The notes under the pieces are model-generated. The model did no database searches, was not told the origin of the DNA, and saw only the letters and a list, made by a program, of their open reading frames with translations. 64,000 nucleotides of DNA, taken from IMG/VR virus record IMGVR_UViG_3300028558_000016, positions 1 to 64,000 of that record, one strand, 5' to 3'. Made by a program: the position numbers and the translations under genes. Of this stretch, positions 497-62,208 are shown piece after piece (within the stretch, counting starts at the first letter, position 1; each line of letters opens with the position of its first letter).

Positions 497-1039
497 TTAA
501 TAATTTTTTAGCTTATGAATATCTTCAGGTCCGTTTAGCACAACCCAATCTCTGTCCTTAAACACAAAATGAATTGTAAGCTTTATGTCAGGCCTCTTCG
601 TCCACAGCTCAGTGAAATTCTCAATGTGTTCGATCATGTCATCAAAGAATTCTATCTCCTTAACGTCAGGATAATGCTCATCGATTATTCTTATCGCTCG
701 GTCAACCTTCTTTTTCCCGTCATACTTCAATGAATGGTGATGGAAATAAAGCTTGTTCTTCTCGAGTATTGGCATGATGTTTGGCTTTAGCCTATACATC
801 CTGTTTGTCAACACAACCTTTGCTGCAGTGTAATCCTCAGTTGCACGCATGTAATGAGGAAGTATACACTCCAACGGTTTAATGTTGAATTCAGGCATGA
901 GGCTTTCCCATCTACCCCACCAACCATTATGAGGATATGGAACACCTTTAATCCTCTCGTATTCCTTCTTCCCTTCATCGGGAAGAGGAACATCGAGAAG
1001 AGTGCCGTCCATGTCAAATATGTAAAGTTTTGTTATCAT
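497..1039 (-). CDS. HAD-family phosphatase, Swiss Army Knife RNA-repair-like HAD
   Basis: N-terminal FDMDGT motif, GWWG segment, C-terminal FFDD motif; adjacent to an RNA ligase. Confidence 0.75.
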   Translation of the reverse strand: MITKLYIFDMDGTLLDVPLPDEGKKEYERIKGVPYPHNGWWGRWESLMPEFNIKPLECILPHYMRATEDYTAAKVVLTNRMYRLKPNIMPILEKNKLYFHHHSLKYDGKKKVDRAIRIIDEHYPDVKEIEFFDDMIEHIENFTELWTKRPDIKLTIHFVFKDRDWVVLNGPEDIHKLKNY

Positions 1040-1065
1040 TTATTTCTATTTACTAATTTACTAAA

Positions 1066-2487
1066 TTAAACAATTACATTATAGCCTTTGATCAAATCGT
1101 TGTACAATTCTTTACCATCGAAATCCATCATGTATCTCTTAGAGCTTTTTGGACCTCCGATGAAATCAAAGAAGAACCCTTGGTGCTTCTTCAACTTTCT
1201 TTCTACAACAAATCTCATTACTTTTGCTGCCAACTTCTTTCTCAAGTTGGTCGCAGTTTCATCGCCTCTGTCGGAAGCACATTCTCTTATAGAAGATATT
1301 TCATCACGAGTGAATCCCAGCTTCTCAAAATCAACTGTGTCGATCTCAGCGATGTCTTTCACGTGAGTCAATCCAAGCTTAGCAAGAACATCTGCTCTCA
1401 AACCTCTCGATTCAAAAGTGATTGCATCCTTGTGCTTTCTGTATTCAATGAACTCCTCGTAAGTGGAAATTTCAGAAGTCAACTTGTCAATTTCTTTTAA
1501 AGTTCTCTTCCATCCTTCTTGCAAGTGTTCAATCTCTTCTCCTCTTCCTGGGAAAGTCGCCTTGTATTCGTTCACGTTGTCCTCACCAGATCTAACGATG
1601 TCGATCAATCTCCAGAACGCAGTTGAGTCCTTGAAGAAGTGGATTGCACAGTAAGCTGGATTCTTCATTTTTACACGAGGGTATCCAAACTCAGTATGCT
1701 TTCCATAATCACAAACAACATAACCTTCCTCACGGTAAGTCATGCCATCGAAAGACTCTTTCAATTTATCTGGAGAAGAATTCAATGCAAGAGTTGGAGC
1801 CATTGGCACACCAAGATCTTTTGATATAATCTCAAGATCAACGAAAGAAACTTCTTCCAAAGTATCAAGCTTTCTTGCACCCAACAAATAGACAGCACTG
1901 TCTTGGTGTGGTGTAACAACAATGTTGTACTTAGTACAAAGCTCAAACGCCAAAGTATATCCATCATATTTCTTAAACAAAGCTTTTACCCACTCAGTTC
2001 TAAGATCACAATGTTCCATCATTCTCACATCGTCATCTTCTCTCTTAACAGTCTCCATGAAAGCGTGAACGAACAAATCCGAGAATGTTCCTCCAAGCTT
2101 AGTATAGTGAAAGTTATCCACATCACCTTCTCCGTTAGCAGTTCCAGTTGTTCCGAAGCAAACTTCTCCTGTAACGTAATCAGTGTAAACGTGAATCATT
2201 GTTCCATCCATCTTTTTGAAGATCCTTGCAGACTCCCAGTTTATAGGTGCTGCGTGTCCTTCTCCAAGGTTGAAGAATTTTCTGAATGCAATGGACATAA
2301 CTCTCCAAGTATCTTTCTCAACTACAAGTCCTCTCGCATCTCTAACTTCCTCGTTAGTGAAGTTGGATTCGATAGAATCGTACTTAAGCAATACCTTGTG
2401 AGGATAGTCCTTGTGCTTCAATTTGAAGTCAGCAAGAGTCTTCTCAAGACCGTGCTCTTTTAGGTATTTTGTTATTGCGAGTTCCAT
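1066..2487 (-). CDS. rnl1: T4 Rnl1-like RNA ligase with C-terminal extension
   Basis: EVRDARGLVVE, AFRKFFNLGE, motif I KMDGT, AFEL, EEGYVV, RVKMK. Confidence 0.85.
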   Translation of the reverse strand: MELAITKYLKEHGLEKTLADFKLKHKDYPHKVLLKYDSIESNFTNEEVRDARGLVVEKDTWRVMSIAFRKFFNLGEGHAAPINWESARIFKKMDGTMIHVYTDYVTGEVCFGTTGTANGEGDVDNFHYTKLGGTFSDLFVHAFMETVKREDDDVRMMEHCDLRTEWVKALFKKYDGYTLAFELCTKYNIVVTPHQDSAVYLLGARKLDTLEEVSFVDLEIISKDLGVPMAPTLALNSSPDKLKESFDGMTYREEGYVVCDYGKHTEFGYPRVKMKNPAYCAIHFFKDSTAFWRLIDIVRSGEDNVNEYKATFPGRGEEIEHLQEGWKRTLKEIDKLTSEISTYEEFIEYRKHKDAITFESRGLRADVLAKLGLTHVKDIAEIDTVDFEKLGFTRDEISSIRECASDRGDETATNLRKKLAAKVMRFVVERKLKKHQGFFFDFIGGPKSSKRYMMDFDGKELYNDLIKGYNVIV

Positions 2488-2498
2488 TTCAAATATGA

Positions 2499-3023
2499 TT
2501 AGTAATGTTTACTTTTTCTTTTCTTTTTTCTACAAACAAGGTCAGCAGCGCAAGAAGCCGCGTAGGCATCTGGCTTTGATCTTACCCTGTATCCGGCAGC
2601 TCTTATGAATCCCATTCCAGAATCGTAAGCAATGTTGCTTTTCCATCTTGGATTTGGATTCAAGTCAAGGTCGATGTCAACAAGCTTCTCCATTGGAGAA
2701 ATTCTTGCATAAACCCCTTCAAGCTCCTTTTCAAGGTATTCGCCAACAGCGAAAGCTCGTTCAACTTCGCCCCAAAGCTTTGAATACATGTCCTTAGCTC
2801 TTGGAACGTTGTCAATACTGAAAATGTAGTGGGCACCTGCACCAACGTGGTATACAAGAACAACCGTTGCATAACGTGTCTTGTTTTTTTGATGCTCGGA
2901 GTCACATCCAACATAGATGCGGATTCCGTTTGGTGATGTGGACATGTGAGTCTTGATGTATTCCCTCATGTAGATACCGAGGTCATCAATGAATGCACCG
3001 CCAAATTTTTTAAAGTTTTTCAT
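2499..3023 (-). CDS. RNase H-like YkuK/DUF458 family protein
   Basis: IYVGCDS, GAGAHYIF, KLWGEV, DIDLDLN and KPDAYAASCAAD motifs. Confidence 0.8.
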   Translation of the reverse strand: MKNFKKFGGAFIDDLGIYMREYIKTHMSTSPNGIRIYVGCDSEHQKNKTRYATVVLVYHVGAGAHYIFSIDNVPRAKDMYSKLWGEVERAFAVGEYLEKELEGVYARISPMEKLVDIDLDLNPNPRWKSNIAYDSGMGFIRAAGYRVRSKPDAYAASCAADLVCRKKKRKSKHY

Positions 3024-3139
3024 TTTCGTTTCTCCTTTCTCTGTGTGTTTGTTTTAACAGCATAAAAGAGAGAAACACACGTCTCAAAATTATACCGGTT
3101 TTTATCGGTTTGTTTCTGAGAACGCGTTTGGAAACTAAT

Positions 3140-3337
3140 CTAATTCATTTCGAACCATCTTCGTTTAAACATTATTCTCAGCCTCGCGTAAGTACGAAGT
3201 CGCGACCATTTAAAATAGACGCTTTTTGTAGTCCTATTTGACCCTCGCGGGGAAACATGACCACATCTTTTTATTAGAATGTGTTCTGCACATTTTAAAT
3301 CTTCAAACTCCTTCATATTACAATCTTTAAAGTCCAT
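3140..3337 (-). CDS. Hypothetical protein
   Basis: 65 aa ORF co-oriented with neighbours; no motif recognised. Confidence 0.45.
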   Translation of the reverse strand: MDFKDCNMKEFEDLKCAEHILIKRCGHVSPRGSNRTTKSVYFKWSRLRTYARLRIMFKRRWFEMN

Positions 3338-3355
3338 TTAATATTATATATCATT

Positions 3356-3646
3356 TTAAAATAATCCATTCTCGAGTATGTCAACGTGTTTCTTCAAAAC
3401 ATCTCCGTGACAACTTGACGGTTTGCACCAACATCCTAAAGTTTTTCCTTTTAATTCTCCCAATCGATCCATCAGGTCTTTATTGTTCAAAAGGTATTCC
3501 TCGTATTTTTCAATTGCTTCCTTTCTCGAGGAAACCTTAAACTCAGCAAGAGTTCCCTCTTTATGAGAATAAGGATTTCCCCAAATGGAAGGACGTCCAA
3601 TATAGACGTCGTACTTATCTTTCTTACAGTGGACAACTTTACACAT
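3356..3646 (-). CDS. DUF4326 domain protein
   Basis: VVHCKK..DVYIGRPSIWGNPY...LKGKTLGCWCKP..CHGDVL. Confidence 0.85.
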   Translation of the reverse strand: MCKVVHCKKDKYDVYIGRPSIWGNPYSHKEGTLAEFKVSSRKEAIEKYEEYLLNNKDLMDRLGELKGKTLGCWCKPSSCHGDVLKKHVDILENGLF

Positions 3647-3657
3647 TAATTAATTTC

Positions 3658-4347
3658 TTATGCGTGCAGCTGTCTAATGTTTCCCTTGTACAACTCCTTG
3701 ATGGTTATTTTTCTTCCTGTTACGTGATCAAGAACAAAACCATCCTGTTCTCTGTAAGTTCTTCTCTTGTCGTTTCTGTTTCCATAACCGATTTGATTGA
3801 ACCTCGTCTCTTTCACCTTGGCACCTATCGCACCATCATTAATGTCCTTGAGCCTTTCTTCAAGTCGTGCCCAAGCAGTCTCTTCATTTTTTTCTCTGGT
3901 CCTGTGCTCTTCAACTCTCACTATCATTCCAGTTGGAATATGAGTCAACACGCAAACAGTTTCTACCTTGTTTCGGTTTTGACCGCCGTTACCAGATCCA
4001 CGAGTGTACTTTCGATGCACGTCGTTTCTATTTAAGACAAATTTTGGTTGGGAGTTTTCTTCCATTACAGCTACCGTCACGGTGCTGGTCTGTACTCTTC
4101 CTCTCTTTTCAGTTGGAGGAACTCTTTGCCATCTATGTCCGCCTGATTCGTTCTCAAAGAACTTCCTGACTCCGTTTCCAGTCAGTCATAGCGAGACATA
4201 ACCTGGCATTCAGTGTTCTACTGCAGAAGCAAATTGATTGATGCTTGCGGCCTTTTGATAAATGTCCGCCATTTCATTGACGAGGAGCTTTGCATCTTCT
4301 CCTCCTTCTGCTGCTCGAATTTCGAGCTTGATCTTTTCTGTTTTCAT
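3658..4347 (-). CDS. Short class I peptide chain release factor (RF1/PrfH-like, 229 aa) with two in-frame TGA codons (4210-4212, 4186-4188)
   Basis: Manual translation from ATG 4347: [22 protein letters not shown]...[52 protein letters not shown]...TRGSGNGGQNRNKVET. The RF motifs EIRAxxGG, ESGGHRxQRVP (PxT) and GGQ lie in one frame; the track ORF 3658..4080 is only the 3' part. Confidence 0.85.
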
Positions 4348-5271: not shown

Positions 5272-5297
5272 AAAAGTAAATGTAATAAAAAATTTTG

Positions 5298-5370
5298 AGC
5301 CGATGACAGGGATCGAACCTGCGACCTCCTCTTTACGAAAGAGGCGCTCTACCAGCTGAGCTACATCGGC
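5298..5370 (-). tRNA. tRNA-Thr(CGT)
   Basis: GCCGATG acceptor, GCTC/GAGC D-stem, CCTCT-TTCGTAA-AGAGG anticodon arm, GCAGG-TTCGATC-CCTGT T-arm. Confidence 0.95.
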
Positions 5371-5374
5371 AAAT

Positions 5375-5457
5375 GAAACCGAGCTTTTATTTAGGGACTT
5401 AAGGCAGGTTGCTCTGCTCTGATATTTGCCCAGGAGAATCTTACTCCTATCGGTTTC
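5375..5457 (-). ncRNA. Candidate structured small RNA (element D) in the tRNA array
   Basis: 8-bp closing stem GAAACCGA/TCGGTTTC enclosing the hairpins TAGGAG/CTCCTG and GGCA/TGCC. Confidence 0.4.
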
Positions 5458-5547
5458 TCATGGCTTGTCGTCCTGAAACATTTTGTATACAAGCCAACCC
5501 ATCACAATAACTGCAATGACAATAACTATGTAACAAAATATATCCAT
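5458..5547 (-). CDS. 29-aa single-TM micropeptide
   Basis: Manual translation MDIFCYIVIVIAVIVMGWLVYKMFQDDKP*, lying between RNA genes. Confidence 0.45.
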   Translation of the reverse strand: MDIFCYIVIVIAVIVMGWLVYKMFQDDKP

Positions 5548-5548
5548 G

Positions 5549-5634
5549 TGCAGTAGGTGAGATTCGAACTCACAACCCCCTGATTGGAAGTCAGGTGCTC
5601 TATGCTTTCGCGTCCAATTAGGAGCTACTACTGC
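5549..5634 (-). tRNA. Atypical tRNA with TCC (Gly) anticodon, enlarged D-loop, Lys/Arg-like body
   Basis: GCAGTAG/CTACTGC acceptor with A73, 21-nt D-loop containing GC-GAAA-GC, anticodon arm CCTGA-CTTCCAA-TCAGG. Confidence 0.8.
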
Positions 5635-5660
5635 AAGTGCGAACTTTCCATCGCATTAAT

Positions 5661-5720
5661 TGGAGCAACCTCAGTTAACTGATTCGCATTTCTGCGAGGG
5701 GGGAGTTAACCTCTGGTTGC
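5661..5720 (-). ncRNA. CCA-ended hairpin RNA (element A)
   Basis: GCAACC..GTTAAC..TCGCA-GAAA-TGCGA..GTTAAC..GGTTGC-T-CCA. Confidence 0.6.
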
Positions 5721-5725
5721 GTAAT

Positions 5726-5773
5726 TGGAGCCGAGGGGCCGTTCTCCAACGGTGAGTTCCCTTTCAACTCGGC
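5726..5773 (-). ncRNA. CCA-ended hairpin RNA (element B)
   Basis: GCCGAG..GGG..CCGTT-GGAG-AACGG-CCC-CTCGGC-T-CCA. Confidence 0.6.
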
Positions 5774-5778
5774 ATGTG

Positions 5779-5869
5779 CGGGGAAGATTGGAATCGAACC
5801 AATTAGTTTGATTTGCAGAAGACATTCTTTTTAAACAGAATGGTGCTCAGCCACCCGAGCATCTTCCCC
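5779..5869 (-). tRNA. Aberrant tRNA (Cys GCA-like remnant) with inserted hairpin; possible pseudo-tRNA
   Basis: GGGGAAG/CTTCCCC acceptor, GCTC/GAGC D-stem, ATTGG-TTCGATT-CCAAT T-arm. The central region has a CATTCT/AGAATG hairpin followed by CT-GCA-AA-TCAAA-CTA. Confidence 0.6.
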
Positions 5870-5874
5870 TTTTA

Positions 5875-6057
5875 TTATTTTCTCTTTCTCTCTTCGTCTA
5901 AATATCTATCATGTTCGTCTTTTGAATAGATCTCATAGTAACCACATTTTACTTTGTAATAAAATGGTGACATGTATTTCCATTCCTTGTTAACATCAAT
6001 GAATTTAGATTTTTCTAAAATCTGATTTTCCTCATCCGTCGGTTTGATTGTAATCAT
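5875..6057 (-). CDS. Hypothetical protein
   Basis: Track ORF 5875..6120; the in-frame ATG at 6057 (MITIKPT...) is the likelier start. Confidence 0.5.
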   Translation of the reverse strand: MITIKPTDEENQILEKSKFIDVNKEWKYMSPFYYKVKCGYYEIYSKDEHDRYLDEERKRK

Positions 6058-6195
6058 CGTTTTGTTTTTAGTTATTAAATAGGATGGGAAAACTTTAAGC
6101 GATAGTCTTTCGACAGGCAAGTTATTTTTTCATCGATGATTGATCAAGTCACCTCAAAATAAAATACTTTTCTACACTTCAGCACTTTCCCTCTG

Positions 6196-6268
6196 AGCGG
6201 AAAACGGGGCTCGAACCCGCGACCTTAACCTTGGCAAGGTTACGCTCTACCAACTGAGCTATTTCCGC
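6196..6268 (-). tRNA. tRNA-Gly(GCC)
   Basis: GCGGAAA acceptor, U73, TAACC-TTGCCAA-GGTTA; canonical cloverleaf. Confidence 0.95.
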
Positions 6269-6269
6269 A

Positions 6270-6400
6270 TGGTGCAGTGTAATTAAAAGGGTTGGACTTA
6301 TCTTCCATTCGTCAATGGCTCTTACCAACTTTCGATGTCACGATTAATTTTAAGCGCAAAACGATTCTATTGTCGAATTTTCTATTTGCGCCGACACTGC
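6270..6400 (-). ncRNA. 131-nt multi-stem RNA with 7-bp acceptor-like stem and ACCA end (element C)
   Basis: GCAGTGT/ACACTGC-A-CCA closing; internal stems GCGCAAA/TTTGCGC, AATTAA/TTAATT, GTTGG/CCAAC, CCATT-GACG-AATGG. Confidence 0.6.
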
Positions 6401-6407
6401 ATTTTTG

Positions 6408-6480
6408 AGCGGGAGACGAGGTTCGAACTCGCGACCTATAGCTTGGAAGGCTATCGCTCTACCAACTGAGCTACTCCCGC
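6408..6480 (-). tRNA. tRNA-Gly(TCC)
   Basis: GCGGGAG acceptor, U73, ATAGC-CTTCCAA-GCTAT; canonical. Confidence 0.95.
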
Positions 6481-6518
6481 GTGCGGACATTGTTTCGGGT
6501 ACAACGTCCAAAACCTAA

Positions 6519-6592
6519 TGGGGCCAGGATCGAACTCGCGTCCGACGAATGGAAGCTAATGAGGCCATCCAAACCGCTCATTATCGCCTGGC
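6519..6592 (-). ncRNA. 74-nt CCA-ended tRNA-like RNA lacking canonical arms (element E)
   Basis: GCCAGG/CCTGGC-C-CCA closing, TAATGAG/CTCATTA hairpin, GAGTTCGATC T-loop-like motif without a T-stem. Confidence 0.55.
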
Positions 6593-6645
6593 ATTTGTTG
6601 ATGATACACAACATTATATACCGACTGTATAAAAATGTTTTAATG

Positions 6646-6718
6646 TGACCCCGGTGGGGATCGAACCCACAACCACCTGATTAAGAGTCAGGAGCTCCAC
6701 CAATTGAGCTACAGAGTC
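6646..6718 (-). tRNA. tRNA-Lys(CTT)
   Basis: GACTCTG/CGGGGTC acceptor, CCTGA-CTCTTAA-TCAGG. Confidence 0.95.
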
Positions 6719-6748
6719 ATTTTGTTGATGCAATACGTCAAAGATCGT

Positions 6749-6973
6749 TCATTTCATGAAAAGATGTTTAATTCTTTCCATATCTACTTCAATAGTTTTA
6801 ATGTTCAACTTCTCTCCAGTCTTTTTAAAATGATCATACCAAAGTCTAACCTTTTCAGATTTTATTATCTGACCATTATAATTTTTCCTTTTCAACCATT
6901 CCTTTCCAAAATATAAAATTCGTTTTTCTGTTATTCTCGAATTCATTATATGTTTAAAAACTTTTTCAATCAT
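6749..6973 (-). CDS. Hypothetical protein within the tRNA array
   Basis: 74 aa ORF fitting exactly between two tRNAs. Confidence 0.55.
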   Translation of the reverse strand: MIEKVFKHIMNSRITEKRILYFGKEWLKRKNYNGQIIKSEKVRLWYDHFKKTGEKLNIKTIEVDMERIKHLFMK

Positions 6974-6974
6974 G

Positions 6975-7059
6975 TAGCGCTGGTGAGACTCGAACTCACA
7001 CTACCGTTAAGGAACCCGCTTATGAGGCGGGCACAATTACCACATCTGTTCACAGCGCT
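6975..7059 (-). tRNA. tRNA with CAT anticodon on a class II (long variable arm) scaffold
   Basis: AGCGCTG/CAGCGCT, A73, CCCGC-CTCATAA-GCGGG, 15-nt variable region, GTGAG-TTCGAGT-CTCAC. Confidence 0.85.
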
Positions 7060-7101
7060 ATCTCGTCTGCTTCTTTGTAGGCCCCGTACTATATCTACAA
7101 A

Positions 7102-7371
7102 TCATTTGGTGGGGCTGTCGGAAACAGCAGACTTTACTTTATTTTCTTTCTTATACGTCTTCAAGAATTCCAAAGCATTTTGCAATTCTTCGACCCTGTT
7201 CTTGTTAGAAGGAATGCTTCCATTTGCCTGTCTAACAGTCATCGGATCCGATGACGATAAATTCTTTTCAAAGAACTCTAAATTTCTTTCTTCCATTAAG
7301 AGTCTTTCTCTTAATAATTTTGCCACGTATGGCATCGGATCATATTGTCCTCTTTCTTCTTGTGTCTTCAT
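7102..7371 (-). CDS. Hypothetical protein within the tRNA array
   Basis: 89 aa ORF starting 2 nt after the CCA of the upstream tRNA. Confidence 0.6.
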   Translation of the reverse strand: MKTQEERGQYDPMPYVAKLLRERLLMEERNLEFFEKNLSSSDPMTVRQANGSIPSNKNRVEELQNALEFLKTYKKENKVKSAVSDSPTK

Positions 7372-7372
7372 T

Positions 7373-7464
7373 TGGTGCGCCCGGAGGGATTCGAACCCCC
7401 GTTGGTGTTATTCACACGTCTGATTAAAAGTCAGGACCATTCGGCCAGCTATGGGAACGGACGC
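7373..7464 (-). tRNA. tRNA with TTT (Lys) anticodon and long variable arm
   Basis: GCGTCCG/CGGGCGC-A-CCA, CTGA-CTTTTAA-TCAG, V-arm GTGT-GAATA-ACAC, GGGGG-TTCGAAT-CCCTC. Confidence 0.85.
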
Positions 7465-7478
7465 ATTTGTTTTTATTG

Positions 7479-7552
7479 TGCGCCCGGTTGGGTTCGAACC
7501 AACGACCCCCTGATTAAAAGTCAGGTGCATCTACCAGCTGAGCTACGAGCGC
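7479..7552 (-). tRNA. tRNA-Lys(TTT)
   Basis: GCGCTCG/CGGGCGC, CCTGA-CTTTTAA-TCAGG; canonical. Confidence 0.95.
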
Positions 7553-7774
7553 AAATATTTGGATATGGAAATCCTCTTGCATCTCGTATTTCAGCGAGAT
7601 GCCTTTACCGTTTATATTTCATTTTAGTTTTCATTATCATTATATTTTTTAAAAGAACAGAATACGTTTTTTACCTTTTCATTAAAATTGAAATGCTCGT
7701 TAGAGCTTGTTTGTTTTGCTGTACGTATTCTTTTTTCTTTTTAATTTCTACCACCATTCAGGATGCTTTTGTTT

Positions 7775-7880
7775 TGGCAAAGATTGGATTCGAACCAATG
7801 ACCTCTCGTTTACTTTCCTTAACAATGTTTCCATTGACGGGGATTTCAGGCGAGCGCTCTACCAACTGAGCTACTTATCC
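7775..7880 (-). tRNA. tRNA-Phe(GAA) with a 33-nt insertion after position 37 (intron-like)
   Basis: Standard D- and T-arms. Anticodon arm CTCG-C-CT-GAA-A-[33 nt including CAATG-GAAA-CATTG]-A-A-CGAG; the acceptor stem has two mismatches. Confidence 0.7.
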
Positions 7881-7908
7881 TTTTGTAATGCTGCATGCAT
7901 CCTTTTTG

Positions 7909-7981
7909 AGCCGAGAACCGGGGTCGAACCGGTGACCTTCCGCTTACAAGGCGGGTGCTCTACCAACTGAGCTATCTCGGC
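7909..7981 (-). tRNA. tRNA-Thr(TGT)
   Basis: GCCGAGA/TCTCGGC, CCCGC-CTTGTAA-GCGGA. Confidence 0.95.
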
Positions 7982-7984
7982 AAT

Positions 7985-8119
7985 TTACAAATATTCGTTC
8001 TTGTTACACTCAAAAAACAAAACCCACAACTCGTGAATTCTCTCATTCACTTCATCATTTCCATTTTGTCTCTTGTTTAACAAAGACATCAATTCGTTTA
8101 CTATGTCATCCTTTTTCAT
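7985..8119 (-). CDS. 44-aa hypothetical protein between Thr tRNAs
   Basis: Manual translation MKKDDIVNELMSLLNKRQNGNDEVNERIHELWVLFFECNKNEYL*. Confidence 0.45.
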   Translation of the reverse strand: MKKDDIVNELMSLLNKRQNGNDEVNERIHELWVLFFECNKNEYL

Positions 8120-8122
8120 TTG

Positions 8123-8195
8123 AGCCTACAACCGGGATCGAACCGGTCACCTCATCCTTACCAAGGATGTGTTCTACCAACTGAACTATGTGGGC
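8123..8195 (-). tRNA. tRNA-Thr(GGT)
   Basis: GCCCACA/TGTAGGC, CATCC-TTGGTAA-GGATG. Confidence 0.95.
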
Positions 8196-8317
8196 AATGT
8201 CTCCGATCGTAAAAATAATCTCTCAAATATTATCAAGATCATTTCCATTCTTTATTAAGCGGTCGGACACGCTACTACTAAATCCAAAAGTTGCAACTTC
8301 TGAATTTTTCATCTTTG

Positions 8318-8413
8318 AAGCGGGAGTGAGATTCGAACTCACGTTCTCTTTCGAGTTGAGGCTTATGAGGCCCTGCTGGCGTTTTGCAACTTCCATCTCC
8401 AGTCGATCCCGCA
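8318..8413 (-). tRNA. Initiator-like tRNA(CAT) with expanded D-loop and a V-arm
   Basis: T1:T72 mismatch plus GCGGGA/TCCCGC, D-stem CTGG/CCAG with long loop, GGGC-CTCATAA-GCCT, V-arm CTC-GAAA-GAG. Confidence 0.75.
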
Positions 8414-8419
8414 ATGTGT

Positions 8420-8541
8420 GCCGCTTCCTGGACCCTATCACCAGGATTTTCTTTGGACTACAGAAGAGAGATTCGCCAATTTTTTTCCATAGAATTAAAC
8501 CATATACGGCGCTTTTCTACACTCTCAACTTTCGCAAGCGG
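8420..8541 (-). ncRNA. Candidate structured RNA (element F)
   Basis: Closing CCGCT/AGCGG; internal GAGAG/CTCTC, CGCCG/TGGCG and TCCTGG/CCAGGA stems. Confidence 0.4.
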
Positions 8542-8552
8542 ACTTTTATTTG

Positions 8553-8624
8553 TAGCGGGAGATGGATTCGAACCACCGACCTCAGGGTTATGAGCCCTGC
8601 GAGCTACCCCTGCTCTATCCCGCA
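8553..8624 (-). tRNA. tRNA-fMet(CAT)
   Basis: 1:72 mismatch, three consecutive G-C pairs in the anticodon stem (CAGGG-CTCATAA-CCCTG), A73. Confidence 0.95.
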
Positions 8625-61555: not shown

Positions 61556-61794
61556 GAAAATCACACTACTATGGTGACTATCTTATATATTTTTCGTATA
61601 TTAGCAAACGATGACCAAAAAGATAGTAAATCCAGACAATAAAAGCTCTAAGATTCAGGACTTAGGAGGCATATCTCCATTGACCAAAATCCAGAGCATA
61701 ACACGGTTCGACATCGTTACGAAGCCGCCGGTGGAACTTTCATCAGAACAAAATCCTTTAATTGAATATAAGAGAAATAGAATAAGAACAAACA

Positions 61795-62208
61795 GTGACA
61801 ACAACAGCGAAAATACTCGTCATAACGAGAGGGGTTCCCGGTGCGGGAAAGACCTCGTTCTGCCAGGACCTGGCGGGACCGGGAGCCGCTGTGATCGCTG
61901 CTGATGATTATTTCTATGACTCAAACGGCAAATACAGCTTCGATGCAACCAAACTTGGTTTAGCTCACGGTGACTGTAAAAGGAGATGTGAGGAAGCAAT
62001 GTTAGAAGGAATCAACGTATTCGTCAATAACACTTGCATCAAGGAACAAGAAATCACACCTTACAGAAAGCTTGCTGAAGAATATGGGTATAAAACCTAT
62101 GTCATTGTAGTTGAAAACAGACACGGAGGAACTAACCAACACGGCGTGCCTGAAGCAAAACTCCAAGAGATGGAGAGAAACCTAAAGAACAGCATAAAAC
62201 TTAGATAA
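61795..62208 (+). CDS. P-loop kinase (AAA_33 / polynucleotide kinase-like)
   Basis: RGVPGAGKT, AADDYF, VNNT, HGVP; GTG start. Confidence 0.8.
   Translation: MTTTAKILVITRGVPGAGKTSFCQDLAGPGAAVIAADDYFYDSNGKYSFDATKLGLAHGDCKRRCEEAMLEGINVFVNNTCIKEQEITPYRKLAEEYGYKTYVIVVENRHGGTNQHGVPEAKLQEMERNLKNSIKLR

Follow-up and report, generated by a model that had tools for sequence, protein, structure and literature searches.

Conserved in-frame UGA codons in a phage RF1-like release factor gene and their possible role in sensing translation termination

A release factor gene that is itself interrupted by stop codons raises the question of whether, and by what means, its full-length product is made. Such a gene lies in a 64-kb stretch of DNA (the window), which covers positions 1 to 64,000 of an IMG/VR contig of 482,156 bp. 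The best tblastn matches of the window were the 'huge phage' genomes, 634-735 kb in size, from Al-Shayeb et al. 2020 (PMC7162821); megablast of the locus against GenBank phages gave no match, although tblastn did detect relatives. Other products encoded in the window include a portal protein, an SbcC-like protein, a ligase and a thymidylate synthase. We analyzed the gene, its relatives and its genomic surroundings, and found that the two in-frame UGA codons belong to a widely conserved pattern, which probably reflects read-through that responds to the termination capacity of the host.

The interrupted gene and its product

Translation of the window showed a single minus-strand frame of 230 codons, from ATG at 4345-4347 to TAA at 3658-3660 (Table 1). 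The initial annotation had described this frame as broken by just two TGA codons, codon 46 in the context TGA-A and codon 54 in the context TGA-C, and both the frame and the contexts were confirmed in the window sequence. There are no frameshifts or other lesions besides the two TGAs, and the in-frame stops are flanked on both sides by conserved, selected coding sequence in the same frame. The codons preceding them are CAC and CTA, and the conserved protein stays in frame 0. We also considered escape by frameshifting at either UGA and rejected it; the gene has neither a CTT before the stop with a downstream ORF in the +1 frame, as in a prfB-type cassette, nor an SD-like purine run 3 nt upstream of the UGAs, and the +1 frame closes within 11 codons.

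Table 1. Coordinates of the features of the release factor gene in the window
Feature	Position	Strand	Description
Whole gene, putatively recoded	3658..4347	-	Domain-1-less RF1-like release factor; 227 sense codons, 2 in-frame TGA and TAA
Codons 1-45, start ATG 4345-4347	4213..4347	-	RF1 domain 2, first strand and helix; PCRF match 6e-05
In-frame TGA no. 1, codon 46	4210..4212	-	Next base A (4209)
Codons 47-53, between both stops	4189..4209	-	Turn and second strand of β-hairpin
In-frame TGA no. 2, codon 54	4186..4188	-	Next base C (4185)
Codons 55-229	3661..4185	-	Remaining domain 2 (codon-recognition loop), domain 3 (GGQ), domain 4
PPT tripeptide (RF1-type PxT 'anticodon'), inside recognition loop	4111..4119	-	From translation
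GGQ peptidyl-tRNA hydrolysis motif	3979..3987	-	From translation
Local 6-bp hairpin CUGACU/AGUCAG, beginning at the base after TGA no. 2	4166..4185	-	Weak, clade-specific, relevance uncertain

The gene pieces before the first TGA and after the second were searched separately against Pfam and NCBIfam profiles. The results showed that the N-terminal piece matched Pfam PCRF (Table 1), and that codons 55-229 matched both PCRF (1.7e-09) and RF-1 (1.2e-21). Among the NCBIfam models, the latter piece scored best with prfA (4e-41, compared to 5e-22 for prfB and 3.5e-13 for prfH), with all three scores far under the equivalog cut-offs (141 bits against 400 for prfA; 49.5 bits against 166.65 for prfH, TIGR03072). 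The full-length homologue P0002, which is 71% identical, aligns through its residues 7-226 to residues 112-340 of E. coli RF1, that is, domains 2-4; the window protein accordingly begins at about RF1 residue 112, and the N-terminal domain 1 of about 105 residues is missing. The PPT of the window protein aligns with the PAT of E. coli RF1. With prfA as the best model, PCRF and RF-1 domains carrying GGQ, and a PxT tripeptide in an RF1-type recognition loop, the RF1-like identity proposed in the initial annotation was borne out. Judged by sequence, the protein is an RF1-derived truncated paralogue rather than an orthologue, and its predicted specificity is for UAA and UAG.

Residues E14, G15, G16, D18, K20 and Y30 of the N-terminal piece are invariant in the family, as are G120, G121 and Q122 of the GGQ motif in the family alignment (A1). 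In the AlphaFold model of P0002 (pLDDT 88.8), strands run from 40 to 47 and from 50 to 57, which puts all recoding sites of the family in one predicted β-hairpin; G49 is kept in 101 of 116 genes.

On one side, the gene is flanked by a tRNA cluster (5297-8624; 11 calls by ARAGORN and 11 by Rfam), and on the other by RNA-repair-type genes, which encode an Rnl1-type RNA ligase, an RNaseH-like protein, a DUF4326 protein and a product with a weak HAD_SAK_1 match just under the Pfam cut-off. The RNA ligase, 1.2 kb from the release factor gene, is of the T4 Rnl1 type and not RtcB. A weak, sub-threshold tRNA-Sec-like Rfam match was found at 5780-5869, with no UCA anticodon, and in a subclade of relatives a tRNA(CUA) lies 1-2.5 kb away from the release factor gene. 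In a search for conserved partner genes, tblastn with the window's neighbours revealed synteny with the closest relative alone, and when 2,335 flanking ORFs were clustered, no cluster was present in more than 18 of 145 loci.

The genetic code of the window was examined by greedy tiling under code 11, which gave 87 genes with 19,128 codons, covering about 90% of the 64 kb. The results showed that these genes end in TAA (59), TGA (22) or TAG (6), that 13 of the 22 TGA stops lie in ATGA overlaps, and that the tiled genes contain 221 TGG codons. When the window was scanned for other genes with an in-frame TGA, none was found; one other same-frame TGA pair, at 61655-62011 on the minus strand, was rejected as the antisense of a plus-strand P-loop kinase gene. 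The claims of the initial annotation that TGA is an ordinary terminator elsewhere in the window, and that the genome is not globally recoded, therefore hold. Stop-codon reassignment of the code 4 type, with many in-frame TGAs and TGA no longer a terminator, is not what the window shows. In the complete 634,780-bp relative LR745206.1, TGA ends 126 of 693 genes. A codon-usage scan of this genome was too noisy, with antisense frames scored as coding, and was replaced by tiling and tblastn; 23 ORFs shared with the window (5,718 aligned columns) contained no in-frame stops besides antisense artefacts of the release factor gene.

In-frame stops and frameshift cassettes among relatives

A protein collection contained 2,715 short RF1-like proteins (E <= 1e-10), falling into three length classes of about 135, about 175-185 and 225-229 aa. 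The full-length proteins among them display W at both columns that correspond to codons 46 and 54, where the DNA has TGA translated under code 4; their remaining Trp residues are TGG in the DNA. With an alignment of family members we retrieved 160 further loci, mapped by tblastn, and the homologue set comprised 145 unique genes from phage and metagenome contigs (116 colinear and 29 frameshift).

The homologue alignment suggested in the initial annotation showed TGA conserved at both columns in relatives and TGG never. Both TGAs are present in the homologue of LR745206.1 (68% identity), in an IMG/VR relative of 74% identity, in L001, L007/L025 and L104, and in the DNA encoding P0002 and P0079. 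LR756502 has the second TGA only and LR756504 the first only; LR756501 has the second together with another TGA five codons upstream of the first position. The relatives with TGA at the same two columns are of 46-74% identity, a shared-column pattern that, from the alignment, is far beyond chance.

Seventeen of the 116 unique colinear genes are free of in-frame stops; 57 contain a single one and 42 contain a pair. The 99 interrupted genes carry 133 TGA, 7 TAG and 1 TAA; thus 94% of the 141 in-frame stops are TGA, and all but 5 are located at columns 39-41 (46 TGA, 1 TAG), column 46 (22 TGA, no TAG) or column 54 (60 TGA, 5 TAG). In four genes (L044, L049, L122 and L126), TGA at column 46 is combined with TAG at column 54. 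Counting the frameshift genes as well, about 88% of the 145 genes have an in-frame stop or a frameshift cassette, and these signals span a local GC of 0.24 to 0.72.

The initial annotation had also supposed that Trp would fit at the two UGAs. This was not supported: TGG occurs at columns 46 or 54 in none of the 116 colinear genes (82 TGA to 0 TGG), and the sense residues found there are variable (E, D, T and N at column 46; E, L, N and R at column 54). At the true Trp columns 73 and 158, the counts for TGG are 75:1 and 34:0, together 109:1. The lack of TGG at columns 46 and 54 and its use at the true Trp columns suggest that TGA is kept at columns 46 and 54 as a stop signal and not as a synonym for Trp.

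The base after the stop was also strongly biased. In-frame TGA is followed by A in 81 cases, C in 47, G in 3 and T in none (A or C in 128 of 131), and at column 46 by A in 19 genes and C in 3. Genes with a stop at column 54 continue with C (39) or A (26) and never with G or T, whereas those with a sense codon there continue with G (33), A (11), T (4) or C (3) (Fisher p = 5e-19); columns 39, 41 and 46 show a significant effect as well. At the 126 genuine TGA terminators of LR745206.1, the next base is never C. UGA-C is known for poor termination, UGA-A is misread by tRNA-Trp, and read-through is least with U after the stop (PMC5289835). By this context rule, the window gene carries conserved stops in leaky contexts, as expected for read-through. 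No conserved RNA structure was found around the column-54 stop with RNAalifold on 40 homologues. In the window, the hairpin listed in Table 1 lies within the minimum-free-energy fold of 4100-4260 on the minus strand (161 nt; fold energy z = -1.8 compared to shuffles), and it is visible only in L001 and L025, the closest relatives.

A frame that requires a +1 shift is used for the N-terminal part at about 30 loci, corresponding to 29 unique genes. The junction sequences are CTT TGA C/A at 19 loci and CTT TAG C/T at 13. GC-rich members have GGAGG three bases upstream of the slippery codon, and AT-rich members have no SD element. The first shift site is located at columns 38-40, matching the in-frame TGA of other members and the canonical Trp of RF1; the second (site B), seen in AT-rich members, follows column 54 immediately, and the SD-less relatives that shift there have Cys at the codon aligned with column 54. 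In one gene (L086), an in-frame TGA occurs together with a shift site of the form CTT TAG C. UGA-type and UAG-type genes have the same recognition loop (PPT). Element for element, the cassette matches the prfB motif given by a 2025 survey that covered more than 12,000 genomes and found no evidence of frameshift regulation in prfA and never TAG among 8,164 prfB motifs (PMC12421855).

For codons 2-45, dN/dS was about 0.2 compared to L025 and about 0.07 compared to L001, and for codons 55-226 it was about 0.1; these low values show that purifying selection acts in one frame on both sides of the stops, and hence that both halves of the gene are translated in this frame. The initial annotation had named sense codons in relatives together with relaxed selection as the signs of a decayed or erroneous copy, and the opposite came out, with TGA kept and dN/dS of about 0.07-0.2. 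In a tree of the 145 unique genes (17 uninterrupted, 99 read-through and 29 frameshift) we counted at least 34 changes of recoding state, and in the AT-rich clade that holds the window gene 78 of 80 genes are recoded. On these comparisons, the recoding signals look like a selected control device and not like damage.

Two premature stops within nine codons can resemble gene decay, and the UGAs could in principle come from a pseudogene or from sequencing or assembly error. Independent assemblies at 62-74% identity have the same two TGAs, dN/dS on each side of the stops lies well under 1, the stops are nearly all TGA and confined to three small sites, and the window copy is otherwise free of lesions. 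We regard this reading as already refuted by the comparative sequence data and give it next to no weight.

Read-through and its alternatives

In the mechanism that we favour, full-length synthesis would require the ribosome to read through two UGAs in weak contexts (UGA-A and UGA-C), both placed within one β-hairpin at columns where the residues vary among relatives. At each UGA, host RF2 would compete with a near-cognate tRNA, most likely tRNA-Trp(CCA), so that output of the factor would go up when RF2-dependent termination is slow and would be very low when it is efficient; two UGA sites in series would make the response steeper. The device would be the read-through counterpart of the +1 frameshift autoregulatory cassette of prfB. 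We consider it probable that the output of the factor is set by programmed leaky read-through of UGA, in inverse relation to host RF2 activity. The most economical mechanism appears to be that a near-cognate tRNA reads the UGAs while competing with RF2, with the RF2 level as the likely controlling variable, and output should rise when UGA termination is slow. LR745206.1 encodes one tRNA-Trp(CCA), whose D stem has a U11-A24 pair, which we take to be the configuration of the Hirsh UGA suppressor; this is a lead only.

The weak UGA contexts, the relatives that combine UGA with UAG and the prfB-type cassettes of sister genes all fit a termination-sensing switch. A single suppressor tRNA cannot pass both UGA and UAG, but a general limitation of termination can. 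Since the factor is of the RF1 type by sequence, UGA-type members would report on RF2, a form of cross-regulation; a factor with PPT would not itself relieve UGA termination, so there would be no closed feedback loop for UGA-type genes. For UAG-type members, we infer that the signal would be RF1 activity, their own included, which would be autoregulation. Several points weigh against the switch. With RF2 fully active, passage through two successive UGAs would yield very little factor, and the 25% of window genes ending in TGA still depend on RF2. Among the 40 homologues, no conserved stimulatory RNA structure was found. The tRNA search covered 64 kb of the window's own 482-kb contig, and a suppressor tRNA may lie elsewhere in the genome.

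The last point leads to the strongest alternative, in which a phage tRNA that reads UGA, located beyond the window or unrecognised, is expressed at some stage and turns the gene on by a timed code switch, a scheme that has been put forward for stop-codon-recoded phages. Recoded phages with suppressor tRNAs and release factor genes exist, RF1 is present in TGA-recoded Jade phages, and the code-change genes of TGA-recoded phages are themselves reported to be written in standard code, which speaks against this alternative here (Borges et al. preprint). The window has several non-canonical tRNA-like genes, the tRNA(CUA) of the relatives' subclade lies close to the release factor gene, and the search spans 13% of the window's contig. 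However, no tRNA with a UCA anticodon was found by ARAGORN, which can overlook odd tRNAs such as the several held by the window, or by Rfam in the 64-kb window, and none among the 289 tRNAs found at 183 loci or the 59 in the complete double-TGA relative LR745206.1. In a pattern scan of IMG/VR for the anticodon arm of a tRNA-Trp with UCA, the window's contig was not among the matches listed. TGA terminates genes in the window and in this relative, is in frame in no other window gene and is not used at the true Trp columns. With an efficient suppressor, T and G would not need to be avoided so strictly behind the stop, and the combinations of UGA with UAG would require two suppressors. The suppressor tRNA that the initial annotation had offered as an alternative thus found no support in these searches, and we consider the timed code switch unlikely.

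Less probable still is that the UGAs are true stops, and that the products are a 45-residue N-terminal peptide and/or an internally initiated, ArfB-like GGQ protein. Gene callers give products of 135-140 aa for many members, the window has a 140-aa ORF from GTG 4080 with Met 95 as another possible internal start, and GGQ-only 'RF-1 domain' proteins are known in mycobacteriophages. Against this, codons 55-94, which include the codon-recognition loop, have no start codon after the second TGA, and they are among the best-conserved parts of the family and under purifying selection. Codons 1-45 encode a strand and a helix that are integral to domain 2, and the two parts of frameshift-type relatives can be joined only by recoding. 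Termination followed by re-initiation at the ATG after the first TGA was also rejected; relatives do not conserve this ATG, and 11 of 22 genes have AGA as the codon after the TGA. We therefore regard separate products as quite improbable.

That UGA encodes selenocysteine, for which it is the codon and to which the weak tRNA-Sec-like match would add, we hold to be extremely improbable, because that tRNA has no UCA anticodon, no conserved hairpin follows the UGAs, the residues commonly encoded by colinear genes with sense codons at columns 46 and 54 do not include Cys (site-B frameshift relatives excepted), TAG replaces TGA at column 54 in 5 genes, and a correctly spaced bacterial SECIS is impossible for both of two Sec codons that lie 8 codons apart.

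Leaky read-through as a sensor of RF2 remains our preferred reading for the window gene. For the family as a whole, we see about even chances that a widespread phage family of domain-1-less RF1-type factors is made only via recoding and acts as an on-demand back-up for termination. The routes would be read-through of an in-frame UGA (rarely UAG) or a +1 shift at CUU UGA C or CUU UAG C, and synthesis would be set by how well the RF2 and/or RF1 of the infected cell work.

Significance and comparison with known systems

Autoregulation of a release factor by recoding is a textbook case, and to our knowledge it has been thought confined to prfB. Our literature search found no description of recoding in phage RF1-like genes. 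The genes reported from huge phages include RF1 and RF2, and they were annotated with code 11, with only TAG recoding mentioned (Al-Shayeb et al., PMC7162821). If our reading is true, the members with a UAG frameshift would provide the first autoregulatory frameshift of the RF1 type, and the UGA read-through members, including the window gene, would be a new, read-through-based sensor of termination capacity. Phages would then monitor and top up the termination capacity of the infected cell, and simple read-through could implement the logic of prfB even in hosts without Shine-Dalgarno pairing. It would also mean that gene callers systematically mis-annotate the family as fragments of 135-180 aa or as code-4 proteins, and the sites would offer natural, tunable modules of UGA/UAG read-through and frameshifting for synthetic biology.

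Among known systems, the mycobacteriophage 'RF-1 domain peptide chain release factor' (ArfB-like) is likewise a phage-encoded GGQ-domain protein. However, its match covers only residues 62-113 of the C-terminal piece of the window protein, around GGQ; it has no match to the codon-recognition domain and no recoding. PrfH is a release factor homologue that is paired with RtcB2 in the rescue of damaged ribosomes. Like PrfH, the window protein has no domain 1, and its gene lies near an RNA ligase and RNA-repair-type genes; unlike in PrfH, the PxT loop is intact, the ligase is of the Rnl1 type, and the linkage is confined to the nearest relative.

The code-change modules of Jade, Lak and crAss-like phages resemble the locus in that a class-I release factor is encoded beside tRNA genes in large phages. 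In these modules of suppressor tRNA, aaRS and release factor, the release factor genes are reported to follow the standard code, and the recoded codon does not serve as a terminator. In contrast, the window release factor gene itself holds the in-frame stops, TGA is still a normal stop in the window genome, and a UCA tRNA was not found in the regions searched.

Read-through in the A1 gene of coliphage Qbeta extends a complete protein into a minor variant. As there, the window gene has an in-frame UGA followed by A or C, with what would be low-efficiency, zero-frame decoding by a normal tRNA. It differs from A1 in that read-through would be needed twice for any functional protein and that the stops are inside a folded domain.

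The closest parallel is prfB, the gene of RF2. As in prfB, a release factor gene has an early in-frame UGA set in a weak context, and its output would be inverse to termination efficiency; the likeness extends to 29 sister genes with the canonical cassette (CTT TGA C, with GGAGG 3 nt upstream in GC-rich members). Unlike prfB, the window gene stays in the zero frame and would depend on read-through and not on a shift, with two stops and without CTT or SD; its product is of the RF1 type, so that the UGA would report on another factor, RF2, and not on the product itself; and the cassette of its relatives also occurs with TAG.

Stop signals and recognition loops in relatives of the release-factor gene

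Among the relatives of the window's release-factor (RF) gene, we found a full prfB-type +1 frameshift cassette (GGAGG, 3 nt, CTT TGA C), at loci including L005, L010, L076, L083, L143, L150, L159 and L179, and also a variant in which TAG replaces TGA; the 2025 survey never found TAG in the prfB frameshift motif (PMC12421855). The relatives at L044, L049, L122, L126 and L086 have two kinds of stop to pass, an RF2-read TGA at column 46 or 41 of the family alignment (columns being codon positions) and an RF1-read TAG, located either at column 54 or in a CTT TAG C shift site. The family census further showed that SPT stands in place of the PPT tripeptide of the recognition loop in four TGA-type members, in which, under the tripeptide rule, discrimination at the second base could be weaker, and that the loop is shortened and without PxT in L005 and L010.

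tRNA genes of the window and its relatives

In LR745206.1, a complete relative genome that also carries the double TGA, we found that the D stem of tRNA-Trp(CCA) includes the pair U11-A24, as does that of the Hirsh UGA suppressor, and this tRNA may raise UGA read-through. Over the whole genome (L184-L196), the base after gene-terminal TGA was T in 53 cases, A in 50, G in 23 and C in none (n=126); in its RF gene, by contrast, C follows the second of the in-frame TGA codons.

At the loci of the subclade whose genes have TGA at both column 41 and column 54, the RF1-like gene is followed 1-2.5 kb downstream by a tRNA whose anticodon is CUA (amber suppressor), and tRNA-Cys often comes next. The presence of an amber suppressor and a predicted UAG-reading factor in one phage is an odd pairing.

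The tRNA-Phe(GAA)-like gene of the window contains an insert of about 33 nt immediately 3' of the anticodon, shorter than a group I intron would be. The five non-canonical tRNA-like genes comprise one with a UCC anticodon on a Lys-like body and a D loop of about 21 nt, one with a long variable arm and an anticodon loop of 8 nt (GTTTAAAA), two with a long variable arm and the anticodons UUU and CAU, and one with CAU and a big D-arm insert that both ARAGORN and Rfam missed; a UCA anticodon is present in none of the five.

Features of the window and of related loci
Feature	Position	Strand	Remark
Low-dS 5' part of RF gene	4213-4347		compared with L025
tRNA-Phe(GAA)-like gene	7775-7880	-	Rfam 51 bits; no ARAGORN call
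Non-canonical tRNA-like gene	5549-5634	-	
Non-canonical tRNA-like gene	5778-5869	-	
Non-canonical tRNA-like gene	7373-7464	-	
Non-canonical tRNA-like gene	6974-7059	-	
Non-canonical tRNA-like gene	8330-8420	-	
RNA-repair-type gene set	497-3646	-	adjoins RF gene and tRNA cluster
tRNA-Trp(CCA)	LR745206.1 343033-343104 (L190)		sole tRNA-Trp(CCA) of genome
CUA-tRNA subclade loci			L032, L040, L050, L052-L054, L056, L060, L064, L067, L125, L127, L135, L139

The 5' part and neighbours of the window RF gene

Compared with L025, the closest relative, the synonymous divergence (dS) of the window RF gene was 0.25 in codons 2-45, far below the 1.6 found elsewhere in the gene, which may reflect either recombination or added nucleotide-level constraint. 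The RNA-repair-type set beside the gene consists of a T4 Rnl1-type RNA ligase, an RNaseH-like protein, a DUF4326 protein and a HAD_SAK_1-like protein, the last a weak match slightly under the Pfam cut-off, and is common only to the window and its nearest relative. The arrangement of RF gene, RNA-repair-type set and tRNA cluster recalls the logic of PrfH-RtcB.
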